A stretch of 62,181 nt of DNA, filler included, from Sluysia triapertura (lineage: Eukaryota): assembly GCA_046118255.1 (NCBI GenBank). It is 5 parts of 5 records of this genome, joined end to end, with 100 filler letters (N's around TTAATTAATTAA, not from the genome) between each part and the next. Parts side by side here need not be neighbours in the genome. Positions count along the whole stretch, not along the records: positions 1 to 11,753 come from JBJNIA010173143.1; 4 more parts are not named here. One strand, 5' to 3'. This document shows positions 852-11,753 of this stretch, in pieces (within the stretch, counting starts at the first letter, position 1; each line of letters opens with the position of its first letter). Made by a program: the position numbers and the translations under genes. The notes below the pieces were generated by a model. That model was not told the origin of the DNA, ran no database searches, and was given only the letters and a program-made list of their open reading frames with translations.

Positions 852-1740
852 TTAGTAGTAGTAAAAATGATGGAATTATTGTTATTATTATTACTACAAA
901 GCTTTTTAAAGAAATAAACGCATAAATCTTTGAATCTTTGAAACACATGATCTGTTCTTTTATATAATCTTATCTTTTCTGACATATAAGAATGAAATAA
1001 AAAGGAGAAAGACAAATGTACTGTGAAGGAGCAACAACAACTAAGTGTAAGATGTATCGTTTGTGGTTGTTGCTTCACAGTATAATAATAAAATCTTTAA
1101 AGTTATTTGGAATTTGTTTTGAAAACGTGTAATGATTAAAGTTGTAAATGAATGAATAATGTTAGGATAATTTGTTGGTACTTATTAAAAGGTTTATAGT
1201 TTGAAAACAAGATTTGTGCATTAGATTTAATGGTTTGGAATGTTTGTTAAAAGGTTGAAGTTGTTTTAATCTTTAATGATGATTACAAAATAAATCTTAG
1301 TGTATTATAATATTGTTACTGGCAAGCATTAACGATGAATATGCGCATGTGGAGTGTATTTTGGTTGGTGTAGTAGGTTGGAGGTTTTGATGTAGATGAT
1401 CTATTTTTCAAAGATAATTGTTAGAGTTGTTTGACAAAACTATTATTTTAGGGTTTGTGAAGGTTTCTCTTATGATTGTGATTTGTTTGTTGAAATATTT
1501 AATGCATGAATGTTATGAATTGTTTGAGGTAAAATATAGAAGTTTATTGTGTGATAGGTGGTTGAGATATTAGTTAATGAAGTGTTGTGATTATTGAATG
1601 TTGTTTTATGATGTTTGTGTTGGTGTACTTGAGAAGTAAAAAGTATGATTATTGTGAAGATTGCATTTTGATGAAATTTGATTTATGAATATTGGTTTTT
1701 ATGTTTTGATTTGGTTTAGCAATGAGTGTTGACCACTACA
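560..1740 (-). mobile_element. LTR-like terminal region of the cargo-carrying element family (copy 1)
   Basis: Minus strand starts TGTAGTGGTCAAC at 1740. It is followed by ~650 nt of strand-asymmetric CA-rich sequence, an (ATT)n tract and a CCAAT/TGACAG-rich block at 560-735. The same order recurs at 20620 (+) and 53180 (-). Confidence 0.65.
802..850. repeat. (AAT)n microsatellite
   Basis: Near-perfect trinucleotide run; it explains the poly-L/poly-I ORFs 706..948 and 755..1078. Confidence 0.95.
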
Positions 1741-4700
1741 ATTATTTGTTATATATAAGAAATAATCATGACAATGATCTATGACAACGTTATGGAAATT
1801 CGGAATATCTTTTGGAAATTTTAAAAATTCCGGAAACCAAAATGAATATATCTTAAAGATTTAACAACTTATGCAGAATATACAATGATATTAAGATAGG
1901 TTGTAGGTTAATATACTATTTATGTTTCAAAAATATGGAACCAAGTATTAGAGAATGTTAAATTACCGAAAGATTATGAAATATTTAAGGAAAATGGTAA
2001 TTATTGATTAATGTTAAGAACTTTTCAGCACTTATTTTATATAAATTAATATATTAATAATAATTTTTATAAATTATTTCTTATCTTTAAATATATACTA
2101 AATACCATTGATATTTATAATGTAATTAATTATTCATTGAATAATTATTTAAAAATTCAAATATCAATATAATAATTTCATTAATTTAAATAATTAAATA
2201 ATTTTCCTTTTAAAATGGCAATTTTAATATTTCTAAAATTGAAATAAAACACTAAAAAAAGAAATAAAGTAATAAAATTTATTTCCAAAGTCTAGTCATA
2301 ATAAATTATTAATTTCTTTCATTAGAATTAATTTGAATTCTTGAAATTAATTTTATTTTCTTGTTAATAAAATCATAAGATTGTTAATAATAATGACAAT
2401 AACATTGTTAATAATAATGATAATAATAATAATACCTTAAAATGTAAATTAAGTATTAAAATTTAAATTAAAATTAAAAGAACAAAAAAGATTTTAATTT
2501 TTTTTTAAAACTTCAAAAAGAAAAAGCATGAAATATGTACATTTAGTCACGATTTTTGTTTTAAATAAAAGATAAAATGAAAATATACTTTTGCCAATTA
2601 AATGTAAATGTAAAAGTATCGGTTTTATTATATAATTAATTATATAAAAATATGATAAGTAATTCATTTTAAAAATTATTCATATCATTTCAAAGCATTT
2701 TGATTAATAAATCATGCATATCTTTATGGTAATTTTCAAATATTCAGTTATATTTTGAATTTATATGATCATATAGTCATGTATGATAGAACGGTTCATA
2801 CAATAATATAACGGTTCCACAATGTAACTGTAAAATCGAAATTTATCTATTAACTGAAGAAGAAGAAGAAGATTATAACTGTTTATGAATGATATTAGAA
2901 GCAGCAAGAACATATTTGAATAAAGTATTAAAATTGTTTATTTTGTAAAATATGATTATTTATTATTTAATGCTTTATTTATATTATTTAAATATATTCC
3001 AGATGTTTTTTTATTCAAATCTTATAATTTCTATGAATTTGAATTATCTTTTTACAGTCGATTAAATAAAATCTAAAAATATATTTAAAATTAATTATGA
3101 CATTATCTTTTATTAATTTTGTGTTGCAAAAATTTATTTTAAATCCCTTAATTGACAATAACTTTATAAATCTTAAAAAATACTTAACGTAAAAGACGTA
3201 TTGTTAGTTCAGGATAATTTCTCAAAAAAGATTCTTATTTCCAATGATTATAATTCACATTCTTCTCACTAAACAACCCTTGAATTACAATGATAAATTA
3301 GTGACCCTCTTTTTTATATCTGTAGCATATCTAAAACTACAAATGATGAATTTATATAATTAAGAAATATTCTATTACTAATAAATTCAATTTAAAATGG
3401 TTACTTTTTATTAAGTTTACAATAGAACGAAGCATGATCATTCAGTTAGACAGATTTACCCTATTCCGTTATAGCATTGCAATTTTAGAACTAAATATGT
3501 TCTACAGTTTTTGATAATTAATACTGTTCTACGTATACATTGAATAAATAAATAATATGCTGTCAATTGGTAGACACAAATAATGTATAGGCAATGATGG
3601 TTTTGTCAATGAATGAATAATTTACCGACAATTTTAAATAATAAATCTACTATTAATTGTGATGTATCTTTTTATAATTTTTAAAAAATAAAATTAAATA
3701 AATACATGAAATAATTATTATATTAAAAATAGTTTATTTACTAAACAATTTCGATAGATAAACAAAATTGTTTATACATTTTTTGAAAATAAATATTTAT
3801 TAACTAATTTCAAATATCTGAAATGATTTTAATTACAACAGACAATTGATAACGCTTAAAGTTTTAATTAATAAAACAAATTTAAATTTTATGGATTTAT
3901 CTATCATTATATATTTTTAGATTAACAAATAATTTTTGTAATAACTTTTAAAAACATTTATAAAAAATTGTACTATAAATAAATATTTAAAACTTTGATT
4001 TTATTTATGTTTATTAATATATACTGTTATAATTAAGATATTTATATATATTATATCGTTATAAAACAAAAATAGAGTTACTTTTCCAAAAATGAAACCT
4101 AAAATCCTGGAATTTTGGCCAATTTCCATTGATTTTGATTGGCTAATGACTTATTTATTATTCGAAATTTTGGACAATTTAATAATGTTTAATAATTCGA
4201 GGAATTTTATTTATATTGTTGTTTTTAGAAAAATATTTATAAATTATTAAGTTTTTGTTTAAATTGTAAAGCCGATTTCACGCACTCCATGTACTTACTA
4301 ATATACAAGTACATACTAATACATGTACATACTAATATACAAGTAACTTAAATTAATAACTTGTTTTTAATCCCTAATTTACTGCGGATTAAAATCCTTT
4401 TTTATAATACATATATTAAAATAAAAGACCCAAGAAAGGCTTTTATTATAAAATGTCTCTATTATTTTATTCTTTTGTTTATTCAGATCATAATTACAGA
4501 GTTTTATAATCAACTTTCATATTAACTTTGTTACTTGTTTAAAATTATGCAAATCAAAGTTGTTCCAAAAAGATTGATAACATTGTGGTAAATTTAGTTT
4601 GCCTTCTAAATTATTGCATAAATTAGAATCCTTCGTGTAATTAAATAAGATAAATACAAAGATACTAATACTAACTGTGACATAGAATAGAATAGACCCT

Positions 4701-7700
4701 CAAAAATATTTGCTACATTAATTGGTAGAAAAAAATATTAGTTAAAGGTGTCACTTCATATCATAAGTGGTATACTGTAGCCGCAGGTTAAAAATAAATA
4801 TTATATTATAAATAATATATGTTATCATAAATATTATAAATAAAATATAATAATAAATATTAAAAATAAACCACAACAATATTAATGCTTAAAGAAAATT
4901 AAAGTCACAAAAGAATATTCGAAGAAACATCATAGCGCATTTTAAAAGCATTTATGTAACTTGATAAATCAAATAAAATGTATCGGAAATAATGGTTATA
5001 GTTTAATAACTAAAATGAGTCATTTATTTCAATCGTTTTTAAATAAAAGTAAAAATTGTATTTATGATAAATTTCTTAGAAAACATATTTTTTGAATAAC
5101 CAGTGTAATTTTTACATATGAAAAAACAATTTCATGTATTTGACTGACTCACAATTAGTTTCTGGTTTTTCTCTTAAAATTGTACGATTCTAAAAGAATT
5201 TGGACTTTTCATCTTTTAAATATATTGCAAATAAAGCCTGAAGTAAGTAAACATGAATTACGTTACTGAAAATTATATTGTGCTACACATTCATAAACAG
5301 TTATGTTTAACTTGAGTACGTTCTTCAAAATTTATCTCGTTTATCATATTTATGAGTTACATTCATTATACAATGAGTGTACATTTATATAAATTTATAT
5401 ATGTTAACAAAATATATGTTTTGTTGTAATATATTTTTATTTAATCAAACATCAGATTAATGTAGATGAAACTGAATATATATCACTAATAAGTACTTTT
5501 ATGTTGCAAAGAAAGAAATGAAAATAAGCATTCGAAGATTTAAGTTGTACATATAAAAATGAAATCCCAAGCAAATACTAGGCGATAGATTAAGAAATTT
5601 AGAATGGTAGAATGTCTTGTTTTAATGAAAACCAAGCTTGGTGACTGCTGTAAACTTGCACTATAATAAATATGAGAAAAATGATAAATCAATTAGAACT
5701 AAGCCAATTAAAAATTTCGCTATATATCTATTAATAAGGCATAAATTTGAATTATTTCAAGATACAACCAAAATATTTCTATTTTGAAATTATGAAAGAT
5801 CTCGTAACATGGTGAAAAAGTGGGTAAAAAAGAAACGGTTTTTTTAATTTGATAAATTGTGAAATTATGTATTAATATTTATGTTCAATAATGTTAGACG
5901 CATTACTTAAAGAACGTACAAATTATATTGTGCACTTCATTATTATTATTATTATCATTATTATTATTATTATGACGTGTTAATAAACTTTAATTAATTT
6001 AATTAAAATTTAAAATGAAAATAAAATTAAAATTTATTTTAAAATTAAACTTAAAATTTTAGTATAAAATTAATTTAATATTTGAATTCTTTCTTTTAGT
6101 TTTATATAATTTTAATTTAAAATAAAAATTATTAAATATTAGTATAATTTATACAATTTCTTTATTTAATTTTAATTTTTTAATTTAAAATATAAACATT
6201 TCAATAAATAATTTTATATTAATTCTATTTATTTTCTATTTATTCTATTATTATGTTATATTTTTTATTTTAGGACATTTTTATTCAGTATTTTTCTAAA
6301 ATTATAAATGAAATTTATAATAATAATTCTTATTATTAGTGAATAGATTATTTTAAGAAACATTATTTTTTGGTATTAGAAGATGATTTGGTGAATAATT
6401 GCGTTATCACTGAATGGTTTTAATTAAAGATATTTATACAAAATAAATTTTATTATTAAGATTATTATTATTGTGTTGAATTGATATTTTTTAAAAATTC
6501 TTATATAAGAGAATAATTTTATTCCATAAAACTATATTTCAACAATGACAACAAAATTAGTTTATGTAACATTTTTAATCAGACTAATTATAATCATAAA
6601 AAATAAACATTAGCCTTAATACTTTTGTAAATTTTAATTTCTTTTAAGAATATGCTTTGTTTATAAAATGCTATTGTTGAATTTTTTTTTGATTTTTAGA
6701 GGTCTATTTTTAAAAGTCTTATTTCAATGGAAAACAATATTAAAAATAAATATTTTAATCCTTAATATTTTGTTGTTTTTCTTTATATTATGTATTAAAC
6801 ACACAATTTTGCTTTCGAATTATCCGAATATTCTGATGAAATCAAAATCAATGATCTTTTATTTACCTTTTTAGCTAGTCGAATGTTTGTTTATATCATA
6901 TTTTTGTTTGCTCATCCCAGACTCTAAAATATGAATATTAAATAATCTTATATCTACACATATATTTACCAAAATTATACTTGAAATATTATTTGATTAT
7001 TAATTAGATTTTTCTTGATATATAAAGTGATTTATTTTTTATTTTTATAAGTAAATTAAAATTATTAAAAAGTAATATAGTTATAAGATTAATCTGAAAT
7101 TTACTAATTTAAGCTTTGAATCTAACTTAATTATTGACGAATTTTTTATTTGATTTATTAAACAATATAATTTAAACAATAATTTTGATTCAAACTTTAT
7201 CAAAAGTTTTGACGTAATATCAAATGCTGACTCATTATTTTAAAAATTAAATTTAGAAATAAAATTTGGATTTGTCAGTACAATTCATATTTAAATAACA
7301 TTTATTTAATTTTTAAATAAATAATGTAATTGTTTTAATTTGTTTTTTAATTATAATTAGTACAAGTATGGAAAATACGGAAACATAGAGTAGCATAGAG
7401 AACAAGATTATAATCGATGCACATAATTGATGTCTTTTTATTGAACTTCGAGAGGTGCTAGAGAGTTAAATTATGTTTAAAATTATAGATTCTTGATGCT
7501 TGATTTTTAAAAATAACCATATCGAAAAATTCCGCTCAGTTTAAAAGTTATCGATTTGTCCGTATGTCTTATGGCTAATATAATAATAATAAAAATATTC
7601 AATATGGAAAATGTAGTTTATAAAAAAATTCAAACCTCACACACAATTACTAAAAATAGACAAATAAAAATCAAAAATCGGAATACTCATGACACAACTC

Positions 7701-8191
7701 TATACAAAATTCAATAAATTTTCACATCATAATAATGATAATACTTACATTAACATTTCCACTGCAACATAAAATTTAATATTGATATTATAATGTAAAA
7801 CATTATTATTATCATATTCTTTTGAATAATGTATACATGCTTCATGATCTAAATGTATATTATTATCTTTGATAAAATTAAATTTAGAATTTTTAGATTA
7901 TTATTTTGTTAAATTTGACCAACTAAAATTTGAAATCTTTATTCACATTTTCTGTAAATACATTATTTCCAATCTAATATTATTTTATATTTTATTTGTA
8001 TAATTACAATTTAATTAGAATAACCTACTTTAAACGAACAAAAATATACAATATTGAAACTGTGGATTATTTATCATTTTTTTTAATTTTAAATTACATC
8101 TATATTTATAAACTAATTTTTTCGTATCATTTATTTTTAATATTACGAATGGTTCAAAGTTTATAAGATTTTTAATACATTCAATGAAATT

Positions 8192-8800
8192 TTATTTTAT
8201 TTTATAATTCATAAAACAAAGACAAAATTTATTCATTTTTATAAAATTTTTAACATGTAAACTTAAATTTTGTTCTGTGTCGGGAAGTGCCATCAAAGAT
8301 AATATCAGTTCGTGGATTCTACGATGGTGATTTGTCAACTCTGACGTCCAACCAAAAATATCTACGATTTTAGACGTATTATGTGAATACAAACAATTAC
8401 TGCCGAATTTTGAACACTTCCAACTTTGGGTCGTACCGTATAGACACAAACCGGACTTGAAGATTGTTGTTCGTTTTTGTTATGTACAGGACTGATGGAA
8501 TCATTTGAATTCTGGTTGTAAAAATATCACGATCAATGATGAAGTCTATCTATATGTGCAACTTTATCCGAGTAAAAGTTTTAGATTCTAAATCTAATTT
8601 TTGAGGATTGTATGAAAAGGAATTTGTAGAATTTAACTTCATTTCTCTATCACTAATTTTACTATTGATATGTGTCAATACATCCGGCTTTCATCGATAA
8701 TACTTGAATTGTATCTAATAATTCGCAAGCTTCAATCATTTGTTTATTTGATATTCTTGTCTCTTTAGGCTTTATACAACATTCATTGATAACTATAACT
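8192..8800 (-). pseudogene. Unkempt-like CCCH zinc-finger cassette (frameshifted), directly downstream of the E(z) fragment
   Basis: FKSGLCLYGTTQSWKCSKFGSNCLYSH is C-x9-C-x6-C-x3-H (8381-8446), the spacing of Unkempt ZF3 as recalled (YKTGxCIHETDxxGxCxKNGLHCAFAHG). An upstream FIIDRDIF motif is shared with the 51.6 kb copy. Confidence 0.6.
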
Positions 8801-8809
8801 GTATTACAG

Positions 8810-9675
8810 TAGGATGGCTTATTATACATTGAACTTGGTGATCTGCATGGATACATAATAATAATGATCGGAATGTATGGGTTATTTTATCACGACTGTG
8901 CCATAATATTTTACTACTTACTACGGTATTCGTTACTTTTGTGTTATCTTTAAATTTTATTTCTAACTTCGTCATTTCTGACTCATTATCAAAATTCGGT
9001 GTCACTTTGTATGCAACGTGTTCATTTGAACTAAAAATATCTAAATAACGATTTATTAATTTATATTTCTTATATATTTGTTGGACATACGGTAGCAGTT
9101 CGATCTAATACTTTAAAACTTAATAATAATAAACTTAATAATTAATAACATCAATATTCTTTAAATAAACACTAAATAATCTTTCATCAAAATTAAAAGG
9201 AAAATTTACATACAATTTACCTTTGTAATTATTTAAAAATTCATCAATAAATTTTACATCATGTTCATCACTCATGTAAAGAATATTTGTTAATTTAGTT
9301 TCATCTTCCACGCAAAAGTTTTGTTGTAATGGAGTCCAACTAAACATATATGGACGTTTTACAGCATGATTTAATAATTTTACACAACTACGGTATAATT
9401 TATTATTGCTTTTAATTTCAACATCATTATGTTCAATATAAAATTTAAGAAAACGAATTTTTTCTATAAAAGGTTTTAGATCACTGATTTGGCGTAATTT
9501 TGCCGATTCTTGCTCAATAAATTCAAAATTTTCTATTAATAATCCATCTGCATCACTTCGCCTCTTAGCAACAGTATAATTCTTTAATCTATTACATCCT
9601 TCTTGAACTATATCAATTATTTCGTCAGCTACTATTGTAGTTTTAAGTTCATACGATTTTTCAACTTGTGCTCAT
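8810..9675 (-). pseudogene. Intronless E(z)/EZH1/2 N-terminal fragment (SBD-EBD-BAM-SAL-SRM-SANT1, start of MCSS); no CXC or SET domain
   Basis: The open frame 9671-9135 contains VKLLNHAVKRPYMFSWTPLQQNFCVEDETKLTNILYMSDEHDVKFIDEFLNNYKGKL, versus EZH2 [60 protein letters not shown]. After stops/frameshifts come VTPNFD and SRDKITHTFRSLLLC, versus CTPNID and QREQSLHSFHTLFC. The ATG at 9675 is one base out of frame. Confidence 0.88.
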
Positions 9676-11753
9676 TAAATATTTTATTTTTTTAGCGTAT
9701 TTTAAATTTTTGTCATTAATTCAGTTGTTACTAATTATAGTGTCGTGGAATGTGATTTTATGTAGAGTGTGTTGAATTAAATTTAAAATATTTCAATTAA
9801 TTTTTAAAGTACCTCTTTGTTGATTTTCAATGTTGAGTATGATATTGATGTTATGGAATTTTATGTCTAAAGTGTTTAAAAATAGAAAAAAATTGTGAAA
9901 TATTATGAAAGGTGATTTTGTTATGTAGTGATGAAGTAAAACTCCAAAGCAATGGGTTAAATTTTATAATAATAATATTGGTAAATTTATTTATTTTAAT
10001 TATTTATAATTATTTAAGTTCAAGTTATGTTACTTTCTCAAACAAAATTAATGAAGTTAGTAAATTTTGCTACAAAATATTTTAATAATTATTGTTTTCT
10101 TTCGTTTAATTATATTCTTAAATTAAGTAAGATGATTTATTAATTATTTAATTTTTTTATAATTAAAAAAAGAATTCATTATTAAATTATTAAATAATTT
10201 TTATTTTGTTCATTTGCTTTGCATATTTTTGTTGTTCTAGAAAAAGATAGTTGACGATTTAACAATGAATGAACTTTAAGATATTATTTTAAGTAACGTG
10301 TTTCATAAATGTACAAACAAAATGTTCAAATCAATTTCATTATATCATTAAAAAGCATAAATGACACTTTTAAAGATTAATATACAAAACATCATTACAA
10401 TCTCACCGAAGTTGCCAATTTATTATTTAAATATCTACTAATAAACATATTTTACACCTAAAGCAACACTTTTTAGAAAATGTTACAATATTATTCATTT
10501 TAATCCAATTTGCATCTCAAAAATTAAAGAAAAAATTATAAATTTCACATTACAATAATATTACAAATTGCCAAAACTATAAAAATAATTAGAGAAAAGT
10601 CTACATTTATTGGAATATTAATATTTTAAGGTATTATATTTGTGCAAAAATTAATATTAGTTAGCATTATTTTATAATATGTTTGGTCATAATACTATTT
10701 ATGTACATTCATGTTGTAGTTATGTGTTGTTTTACGCATATTAGTATTCATCTTTTTCATTTCCATTTAGGTGAAATTAGTACATTTCTTCGTATTCCTG
10801 GTGCTGCCATATTTTTGTACATTTGACTACGTTTTTAGTTCCACTTTTATTATTCTATCATTCATATTCGTTTATTTATTTTGATGTTACGAAAATATTC
10901 CCCGATTTATTTTATAAATATTTCATAAATTTAAAAGTATTATTTCATAATTTTCTAAATAATCGTACAAAAAGACTTAATAAAATTTAATACCAAAGTC
11001 AATGTTAGTAAGATAAAAATATATACTGAAAAACAAAACATACAAATTAATAAAAATAGTTTTATCTGGAAATATTCCATTACTTTAAATTATTTACATA
11101 AATTCCTAAAAGATTTTTCTTTAAAGGATCAATGAATTTTAGAAATACAATTTATTATTAGATTTATTATTGTAAGAAATAATTATTCTATTTAAAGTTG
11201 CTTTAGAAAATTGAGCTGTAATACTAAACCTAATTAGACAAATGAATCATTACTTTTATTTTAGATTTTCGATTAATGTTTCAGTAAGAATAGTTTTCCA
11301 TTTTAAATAAATACAGAAAATAATCAAAGTTAAGAAAAAATATAATGAAAATATCAATATTTTAAAAGTTCACAGAAAATGTGTTTTTCTTTTCTCATCA
11401 CAACTTTTGAATAGTCAGTTAATGAATCTTCGTGGATTTCTTAAATTCAGAAGTTTTACTTTTATCGTTCATAATATATGTATAATTAAAATATTCCTAT
11501 ATATTTTTCTATATTTTATATATTTTTCAATTTTCTAATAAACATTAATTGATTACTGAAATTTTTTATTGGCTTCAGAACTGATTTTGTTTGATTATTT
11601 TTTTTCATTTTATTCAATAATTTAAGTAAACAAAATTTTATTTATAACTTTTTCCATTTTGAATCTTTGTGCGTCAAAATTTTTGTATTTAATTAAATTA
11701 AATACAATTTGTAAAATATAATTTGTATTTAATTATAATTAAAATTATAAAAT

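Follow-up and report, generated by a model that had tools for sequence, protein, structure and literature searches.

A mobile repeat in the genome of Sluysia triapertura (GenBank assembly GCA_046118255.1) has taken up the 5′ part of a host E(z) mRNA and multiplied it; this is a real case of a retroelement transducing part of a host gene, and it is now dead. One copy lies on the minus strand at 8057–9960 of the window, by which we mean the whole stretch of DNA analysed (62,181 nucleotides, filler included), and is most likely an eroded solo long terminal repeat (LTR) of a gypsy-like LTR retrotransposon. Taking the evidence together, we consider it probable that this eroded copy of a long mobile repeat, with the gypsy-like solo LTR as its most likely identity, descends from a lineage that transduced the 5′ part of the E(z) mRNA and has carried it since as a neutral passenger. 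To our knowledge, clear cases of host-gene capture that can be followed base for base are few in invertebrate animals, and here the intron-containing source gene, the spliced copy, the splice-donor junction and a second junction between element variants can all be read in one genome.

At the centre of the window copy is an intronless version of E(z)/EZH2 that covers the initial ~309 codons (9658–8799, minus strand; the parts are listed in Table 1). The 178-codon open stretch at 9671–9138 matches EZH1/EZH2 chains with E-values of 1e-13 to 1e-12, and the pairing of query residues 97–161 with EZH2 98–165 makes the homology colinear from near the N-terminus. The TPNFD...HTFRSLL part follows at 9005–8860, 3′ of a degraded stretch, and the zinc finger CLYGTTQSWKCSKFGSNCLYSH, with the spacing C-x9-C-x6-C-x3-H, follows on the same (minus) strand. 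An ORF scan of the window found no CXC or SET ORF downstream. A first-pass annotation of this DNA had described an intronless, colinear N-terminal half of E(z)/EZH2 lacking CXC and SET, continued on the same strand by a CCCH cassette, and both descriptions are borne out. We considered 9137–9063 as an intron and rejected it: the stretch, which takes in the exon-2-derived part, is degraded, and other copies read through it without a break. When the window's own pieces were searched against Pfam, no E(z) family was matched; Ezh2_MCSS (PF21358) scored above its cut-off only in sister copies (L003, L014 and L013; E-values 4e-13 to 1.5e-6), and the MCSS motif is degraded in the window copy.

Table 1. 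Parts of the E(z)-bearing repeat copy, with positions counted along the whole window
Feature	Position	Strand	Evidence
Carrier 5′ segment, start of the LTR-type repeat	9730..9960	-	72–86% match to the 5′ segment of other copies
Degenerate junction and remnant of the E(z) 5′UTR	9659..9729	-	Alignment of start regions; comparison with L006
E(z) exon 1-derived part: N-terminal, EED-binding and SAL/SRM region	9138..9658	-	EZH1/EZH2 E 1e-13; 86% nucleotide identity to host L051 1462–1983
E(z) exon 2-derived part, degraded	9070..9125	-	9125–9070 matches host L051 2028–2085; host micro-introns missing
E(z) exon 3-derived part: SANT1-like/MCSS region	8799..9062	-	9062–8789 matches host L051 2162–2463
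Carrier's own ORF from the AG fusion site, including the CCCH finger (8446–8381)	8283..8798	-	72–77% shared with E(z)-free units L046, L023 and L027
Carrier 3′ terminal segment	8057..8281	-	3′ end common to >20 copies, followed by unrelated flanks

In the tree, the window copy is one of the most derived of its family, and it is dead, as the first-pass annotation had also concluded. Scored against the host frame, it carries two stops and three frameshifting indels, its original ATG region has been lost, and the sole remaining ATG is out of frame; alignment of the start regions shows that the ATG-containing stretch is also lost from L045, L019 and L004. Both termini of the repeat unit are eroded, the terminal TGTGGTGGCC motif at the 5′ end and the terminal ...TTTATACCACAACA motif at the 3′ end. 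About 0.9 kb between the 5′ segment and the E(z) part, present in sister copies, has been deleted (L006 159–390 corresponds to window 9959–9732 and L006 1355 to window 9658, leaving ~900 nt missing from the window), the carrier ORF is frameshifted, and a further deletion of ~150 nt at 8281/8283 takes out the unit's intron together with flanking exon sequence. A search of sequencing runs found the window stretch in no RNA run and in one DNA run, where it is present as short contigs that confirm the sequence.

The source gene is present in the same genome, on contig C195376 (L051), with its ATG at 1455. It has two canonical GT–AG micro-introns, at 1992–2026 (35 nt) and 2087–2122 (36 nt), exon 3 ends ...ACAG|GT at 2453, and the spliced coding sequence (CDS) of exons 1–3 comprises 928 nt, or 309 codons. 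L051 is the best match to a related flatworm E(z) protein (P0001), with exon 1 matching EZH2 97–171 (E 2.5e-20) and exon 3 matching EZH2 273–308 (E 2e-8), and, unlike all other matches, it has no carrier flanks on either side of E(z). A separate host N-terminal E(z) exon was sought with P0001, and the search returned family copies or C195376 only; contigs C20947 and C79255 were considered as host exons and rejected as older, decayed copies. The nearest public E(z) proteins are those of flatworms (Echinostoma and Protopolystoma), which share motifs such as HGNFPFDF with the copies, and from this likeness we take the host to be a flatworm. A class of very short introns is known from parasitic flatworms, and the 35- and 36-nt introns of the host gene fit it. 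The genome is very AT-rich (~20–29% G+C at the locus) and is assembled as 619 Mb in 263,945 contigs. Its sole preSET_CXC match is on contig C48210, a 6.9-kb contig that holds the host E(z) CXC exon without neighbouring exons, which implies large introns in the host gene. A relic of a mariner/Tc1-like transposase (…SPDLTPCDFFLW…) lies ~1.1 kb upstream of the CXC exon on this contig, the two features occupying L042 3050–3265 and 4349–4633.

The window copy has many relatives. A protein search of the genome with the exon-1-like part gave 67 matches on 38 contigs, a DNA search added further contigs with the exon-3-like part, and the same junctions recur on about 40–50 contigs. The finger segment belongs to a far larger family, with 3,648 first-look candidates, and the E(z) part and the finger occur in the same order and on the same strand on several contigs. 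In >20 copies, the spliced host CDS aligns as a single HSP (8–928 in the window copy and 1–928 in others) at 80–90% identity; since the alignment is uninterrupted, the copies are without both host introns and derive from mRNA. The E(z) part starts ~70–100 nt before the ATG, ends with the final base of exon 3 and has 85–93% nucleotide identity to the host's own gene. The captured residues, ~1–309, are homologous to and colinear with the N-terminal, SAL/SRM, SANT1-like and MCSS regions of EZH2/E(z), whereas SANT2, CXC and SET are missing, so that the piece is a gene fragment and not a methyltransferase. The first-pass annotation had allowed that EZH2 homology might continue into SET in other copies; no E(z) homology past exon 3 (CXC/SET) was found in the aligned copies, all of which end at exon 3.

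The junctions at either end of the E(z) part are shared between copies. Twelve aligned E(z) copies, that in the window among them, have the same 3′ junction, which joins the host site ACAG|GT to the ...TTAG| of E(z)-free units. In the window it falls at 8799/8798, the exon-3-derived part stopping immediately before the position of the host exon-3 donor. In E(z)-free carrier units the sequence here is ...TTTAAAATTAG, and their homology to the E(z) copies begins with the base that follows. An open frame crosses the junction in L013, L014 and L029, and in the carrier copy L024 a single frame runs from the junction point through the finger. Splicing onto a cryptic acceptor would be expected to produce just such an in-frame union of a host splice donor and an AG site. 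At the other end, the ~750 nt upstream of the captured 5′UTR are themselves an abundant repeat, and the 5′ junction lies at ~1275–1278 of L006, where the match to E(z)-free carriers (C55596, C220166 and others) stops. Upstream of the E(z) part the chimera matches a C55596-type LTR variant that is without the CCCH module, and downstream it matches a C125078-type variant that has the module.

Because the copies share both junctions, they all come from one chimera, made of the front of one carrier variant, the E(z) segment from 5′UTR to exon 3, and the back of another variant, which points to one capture event followed by amplification. In this respect the first-pass annotation was right: it had suggested that a mobile element captured E(z) cDNA and fused it to its own RNA-binding accessory gene, and the E(z) part is spliced, in frame and bounded by the recurring junctions. 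The tree of copies is ladder-like, with distances from the host gene of 0.10–0.24, so the lineage was active for some time while the E(z) part drifted. Two loci, L031 (C248758) and L038 (C98327), are much more diverged (tree distance 0.40–0.47 from the host). In both, the CCCH body is preceded by the exon-3-derived E(z) part only, and they could represent a branch of this capture that is older or evolves faster.

As to the nature of the carrier, the likeliest reading is a gypsy-like retrotransposon LTR that is now found mostly as solo copies. Intact units start TGTGGTGGCCAACCCATTGC (TGTGGTGG...), with unrelated upstream flanks, and have a sharp 3′ end, ...CCACAACA / ...CAGTTTATACCACAACA, again followed by unrelated flanks; the termini are thus of the form TG...CA, with short imperfect inverted ends. 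On C55596, an integrase-like ORF (the Pfam match, to rve_3, is weak, E 0.0014) stops 38 nt before the unit, the unit begins directly after the polypurine tract AAAGGGGG, and the 5′ segment of the window copy is the same segment that follows integrase and polypurine tract there. A search for this junction between pol end and unit gave 1,155 candidates, and at least 35 of the 40 scored run into the first 16–85 nt of the unit. Contig C228735 presents the pol end, the unit start, ~900 nt and the CCCH module in that order. A perfect 5-bp target-site duplication (ATATT) flanks L007, with four of five bases matching at L015 and no match at L010 and others. A canonical 74–75 nt GT–AG intron is precisely missing from some units and kept in others, indicating passage through spliced RNA.

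It is unlikely, given these features, that the carrier is instead a non-autonomous retroposon or other terminal-repeat element that happens to lie near retrotransposon sequence, with the capture otherwise as described. Such an element would not be expected from the TG...CA termini, from the position of the unit directly after the integrase stop and polypurine tract in nearly all of the scored junctions, from the order on C228735, or from the perfect duplication at L007. In its favour, a repeat finder run around four copies returned no LTR pairs and no terminal inverted repeats of at least 40 nt, a pattern search for the unit 5′ end found 28 places but no pair on a single contig, the 263,945 short contigs yielded no full-length element with two matching LTRs, and no primer-binding site was recognised after the unit on the contigs examined. 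The mostly unclear target-site duplications, the variable internal start points of some copies, the tandem of two diverged units on C76150 and the conserved, spliced protein-coding gene that the unit carries, an unusual content for an LTR, favour it as well. The capture account itself holds whether or not the carrier is an LTR.

Several observations were made around other carrier units. On C76150 (L061 and L068), ~320 nt separate two CCCH units that are strongly diverged and arranged head to tail (204–1100 and 1623–4488 in element orientation); this contig was considered as an LTR, a short internal region and a second LTR, and this was rejected, since the two units are different. The second of them has a decapeptide-repeat region before the finger, as does the plus-strand ORF L060 441–1331. 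The flanks of the unit on C125078 are other abundant repeats, with 871 candidates for the repeat that starts where the unit ends. The same unit is followed, after ~230 nt, by a 180-aa ORF (L046 1902–2441, minus strand, corresponding to L025 459–998) that pairs the retroviral aspartyl protease motif DTG with a match (PF24664, E 4e-7) to the C-terminal portion of a Monjiviricetes-type viral fusion glycoprotein. A search against Rfam found nothing, including no Penelope-type hammerhead ribozymes.

For the gypsy-like LTR as carrier, we infer a splice-plus-template-switch route from the junctions. A copy of the element lying downstream of E(z) exon 3 in the sense orientation would have supplied a cryptic splice acceptor and a polyadenylation site, giving a chimeric mRNA in which E(z) exons 1–3 were joined to the 3′ part of the LTR. 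This chimeric RNA would have been co-packaged, and reverse transcriptase, on reaching its 5′ end, would have switched to the genomic RNA of the other LTR variant. The switch would have placed the E(z) fragment inside U3, from which it would be copied into both LTRs, and the chimeric lineage would then have transposed in successive rounds. This route matches both the exact donor junction and the three-part structure.

The E(z) fragment appears to have travelled as a neutral passenger, with neither its frame nor its amino acids preserved. Stops or frameshifting indels interrupt every copy compared with the host frame (28 of 28, in a base-by-base census covering 28 of about 45 copies). An intact fusion should span ~560 aa, whereas the longest open frame among the 67 matches has 298 aa; on this reading of the sequences, every copy examined, that in the window included, is non-functional. 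The 244 nt that include the finger (window 8383–8626) are missing from many copies, and one subgroup has lost the ATG. For the E(z) part, the median of the pairwise dN/dS values between copies is 0.87, pooling gives 0.89, and differences from the host are spread evenly over codon positions 1, 2 and 3 (0.105, 0.104 and 0.113). Grouped by how widely variants are shared, omega is 1.0 for singletons, 0.95 for variants in 2–30% of copies and 0.95 for those in 30–70%, although the power of these tests to reveal function confined to a short early period is limited. Near-fixed variants give an omega of 0.29 (14 synonymous and 18 non-synonymous), a class that mixes the family stem with the constrained host lineage.

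These results bear on a more attractive reading. E(z) is the catalytic subunit of PRC2, and PRC2 silences repeats, so a fragment of it as cargo invites an anti-silencing story; the first-pass annotation had proposed a decoy that titrates EED/SUZ12 or tethers inactive PRC2 to RNA. The form of this idea confined to the time of capture, in which an in-frame E(z)(1–309)–CCCH protein expressed from the LTR acted as a dominant-negative PRC2 subunit or RNA tether, gave brief escape from H3K27me3 silencing and left a selection signal that has since been erased, is in our view very improbable. If true, it would explain how the chimeric lineage outlasted several amplification waves. Broader still, and very improbable as well, is a functional element-encoded E(z)–CCCH protein, at present or in the past, that would have aided escape from Polycomb silencing by either activity. 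The in-frame fusion, the coverage of the EED- and SUZ12-contacting regions of EZH2 (~97–171 and 273–308), the persistence of the E(z)-bearing lineage through several waves, as read from the ladder-like tree and the range of host distances, and the constraint on the carrier's own CCCH module all speak for such a protein. Against it stand the want of a single intact copy among the 28 examined, the even spread of differences over codon positions, the loss of the finger and ATG from subsets of copies, and the variants common to 2–70% of copies, which come from internal branches during amplification and have accumulated at the near-neutral omega given above. The check that the first-pass annotation had suggested, a copy count with dN/dS, thus gave many relatives, with none of 28 intact and no signal of selection (dN/dS ~0.9) either after insertion or on the branches that copies have in common. 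The decoy or tether finds no support in this, and by the annotation's own refuting condition, a lack of intact or selected relatives, the decoy fails. A neutral cargo makes the anti-silencing story unnecessary.

An ordinary processed E(z) pseudogene lying by chance beside a CCCH relic, a possibility raised in the first-pass annotation, or a family of host E(z)-like paralogues spread by segmental duplication, would account for an E(z) part that is intronless and decayed, and is nonetheless extremely unlikely, because all aligned copies have the same 5′ and 3′ carrier junctions, the 3′ junction falls at a splice donor, no poly(A) tail follows the E(z) part, and the copies end at the carrier's own termini in unrelated flanks.

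In contrast to the E(z) part, the carrier's CCCH module is conserved among diverged units, and its substitution pattern indicates constraint by purifying selection. Invariant positions are the C, C, C and H of the finger and the H, R and I of an HxxRI motif. The module has a pN/pS of 0.37, with differences of 0.24, 0.23 and 0.39 at codon positions 1, 2 and 3; because the set was picked for having the finger intact, conservation of the cysteines is overstated, but the third-position excess is unaffected. The gene has the canonical 74–75 nt GT–AG intron just after the finger region (seen by comparing L024, L027 and L037 with L046 and L023), at a position near window 8281. Its best solved-structure match, with the module profile as query, is Unkempt (5ELH residues 93–123, E 0.0015), which has the same spacing. 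The UNK-like CCCH family PF25427 scores 13–30.7 bits in 12 family members, all below the gathering cut-off of 31.1. An exhaustive profile search of 1.84 billion representative proteins gave weak generic CCCH matches only and no close relatives, the ESM Atlas gave no usable match, and a word-indexed protein search with the 290-aa carrier ORF gave nothing.

The likeness to Unkempt, which the first-pass annotation had named, consequently stands only in part. It lies in the rare C-x9-C-x6-C-x3-H spacing, in the residues around the cysteines and in the top match to 5ELH; the carrier differs in having one finger and not six, followed by a lineage-specific NHHRRI helix-like motif, and every copy remains below the Pfam cut-off. 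On these comparisons the finger is best described as Unkempt-like in type, and not as a demonstrated Unkempt relative. The CCCH gene may be an accessory gene embedded in the LTR, which would be an uncommon location for one. A retrotransposon family with a conserved, intron-containing, Unkempt-type CCCH gene inside its LTR is better supported than an early decoy function, and the carrier, as an LTR-type unit with a constrained and spliced CCCH gene of its own that has no relatives in public protein sets, is possibly more interesting than its cargo.

Transduction of host genes is well known from retroviruses, in the capture of v-onc genes and in gag–onc fusions. As there, a segment of spliced host mRNA in the sense orientation has been fused in frame to an element ORF and propagated as a chimera, with one junction attributable to splicing or read-through and the other to template switching in reverse transcription. 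The present case differs in that the E(z) insert lies inside an LTR-type unit and does not replace gag–pol–env, in its flatworm host, and in showing no sign of selection or function. Maize Bs1 is an LTR retrotransposon with a captured gene fragment. Additional ORFs are also carried by LTR retrotransposons of bdelloid rotifers (PMC5408684) and, as aORFs, by those of plants (PMC7264820). All three resemble our family in that extra ORFs or host gene fragments are carried and amplified by LTR retrotransposons, and differ in that their ORFs sit in the internal region between the LTRs. A literature search found no report of an E(z)/PRC2 fragment in an LTR retrotransposon or of a CCCH gene within an LTR. 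Accessory ORFs in or overlapping U3 are known, namely MMTV sag and HIV nef. These likewise have a protein-coding gene within the LTR, at the 3′ terminus of the genomic RNA, but have no sequence relation to the carrier CCCH gene.

Three other features of the window were noted. At its edge, on the minus strand (3–287), a 95-codon open stretch weakly matches the conserved domain of elongation factor 1-gamma (PF00647, E 0.01) and may be a host gene exon cut by the contig end. The interval 900–2080 has a strong skew of G over C (0.53–0.57) and matches the ends of other contigs (L024 103–715, L017, L012, L016, L026 and L032), and it is a further dispersed repeat, at which contigs tend to break. Finally, (AAT)n/(ATT)n microsatellites occur at 787–871, 2365–2434 and 5936–5973, as they do in many of the loci examined, and translate as poly-N or poly-I.
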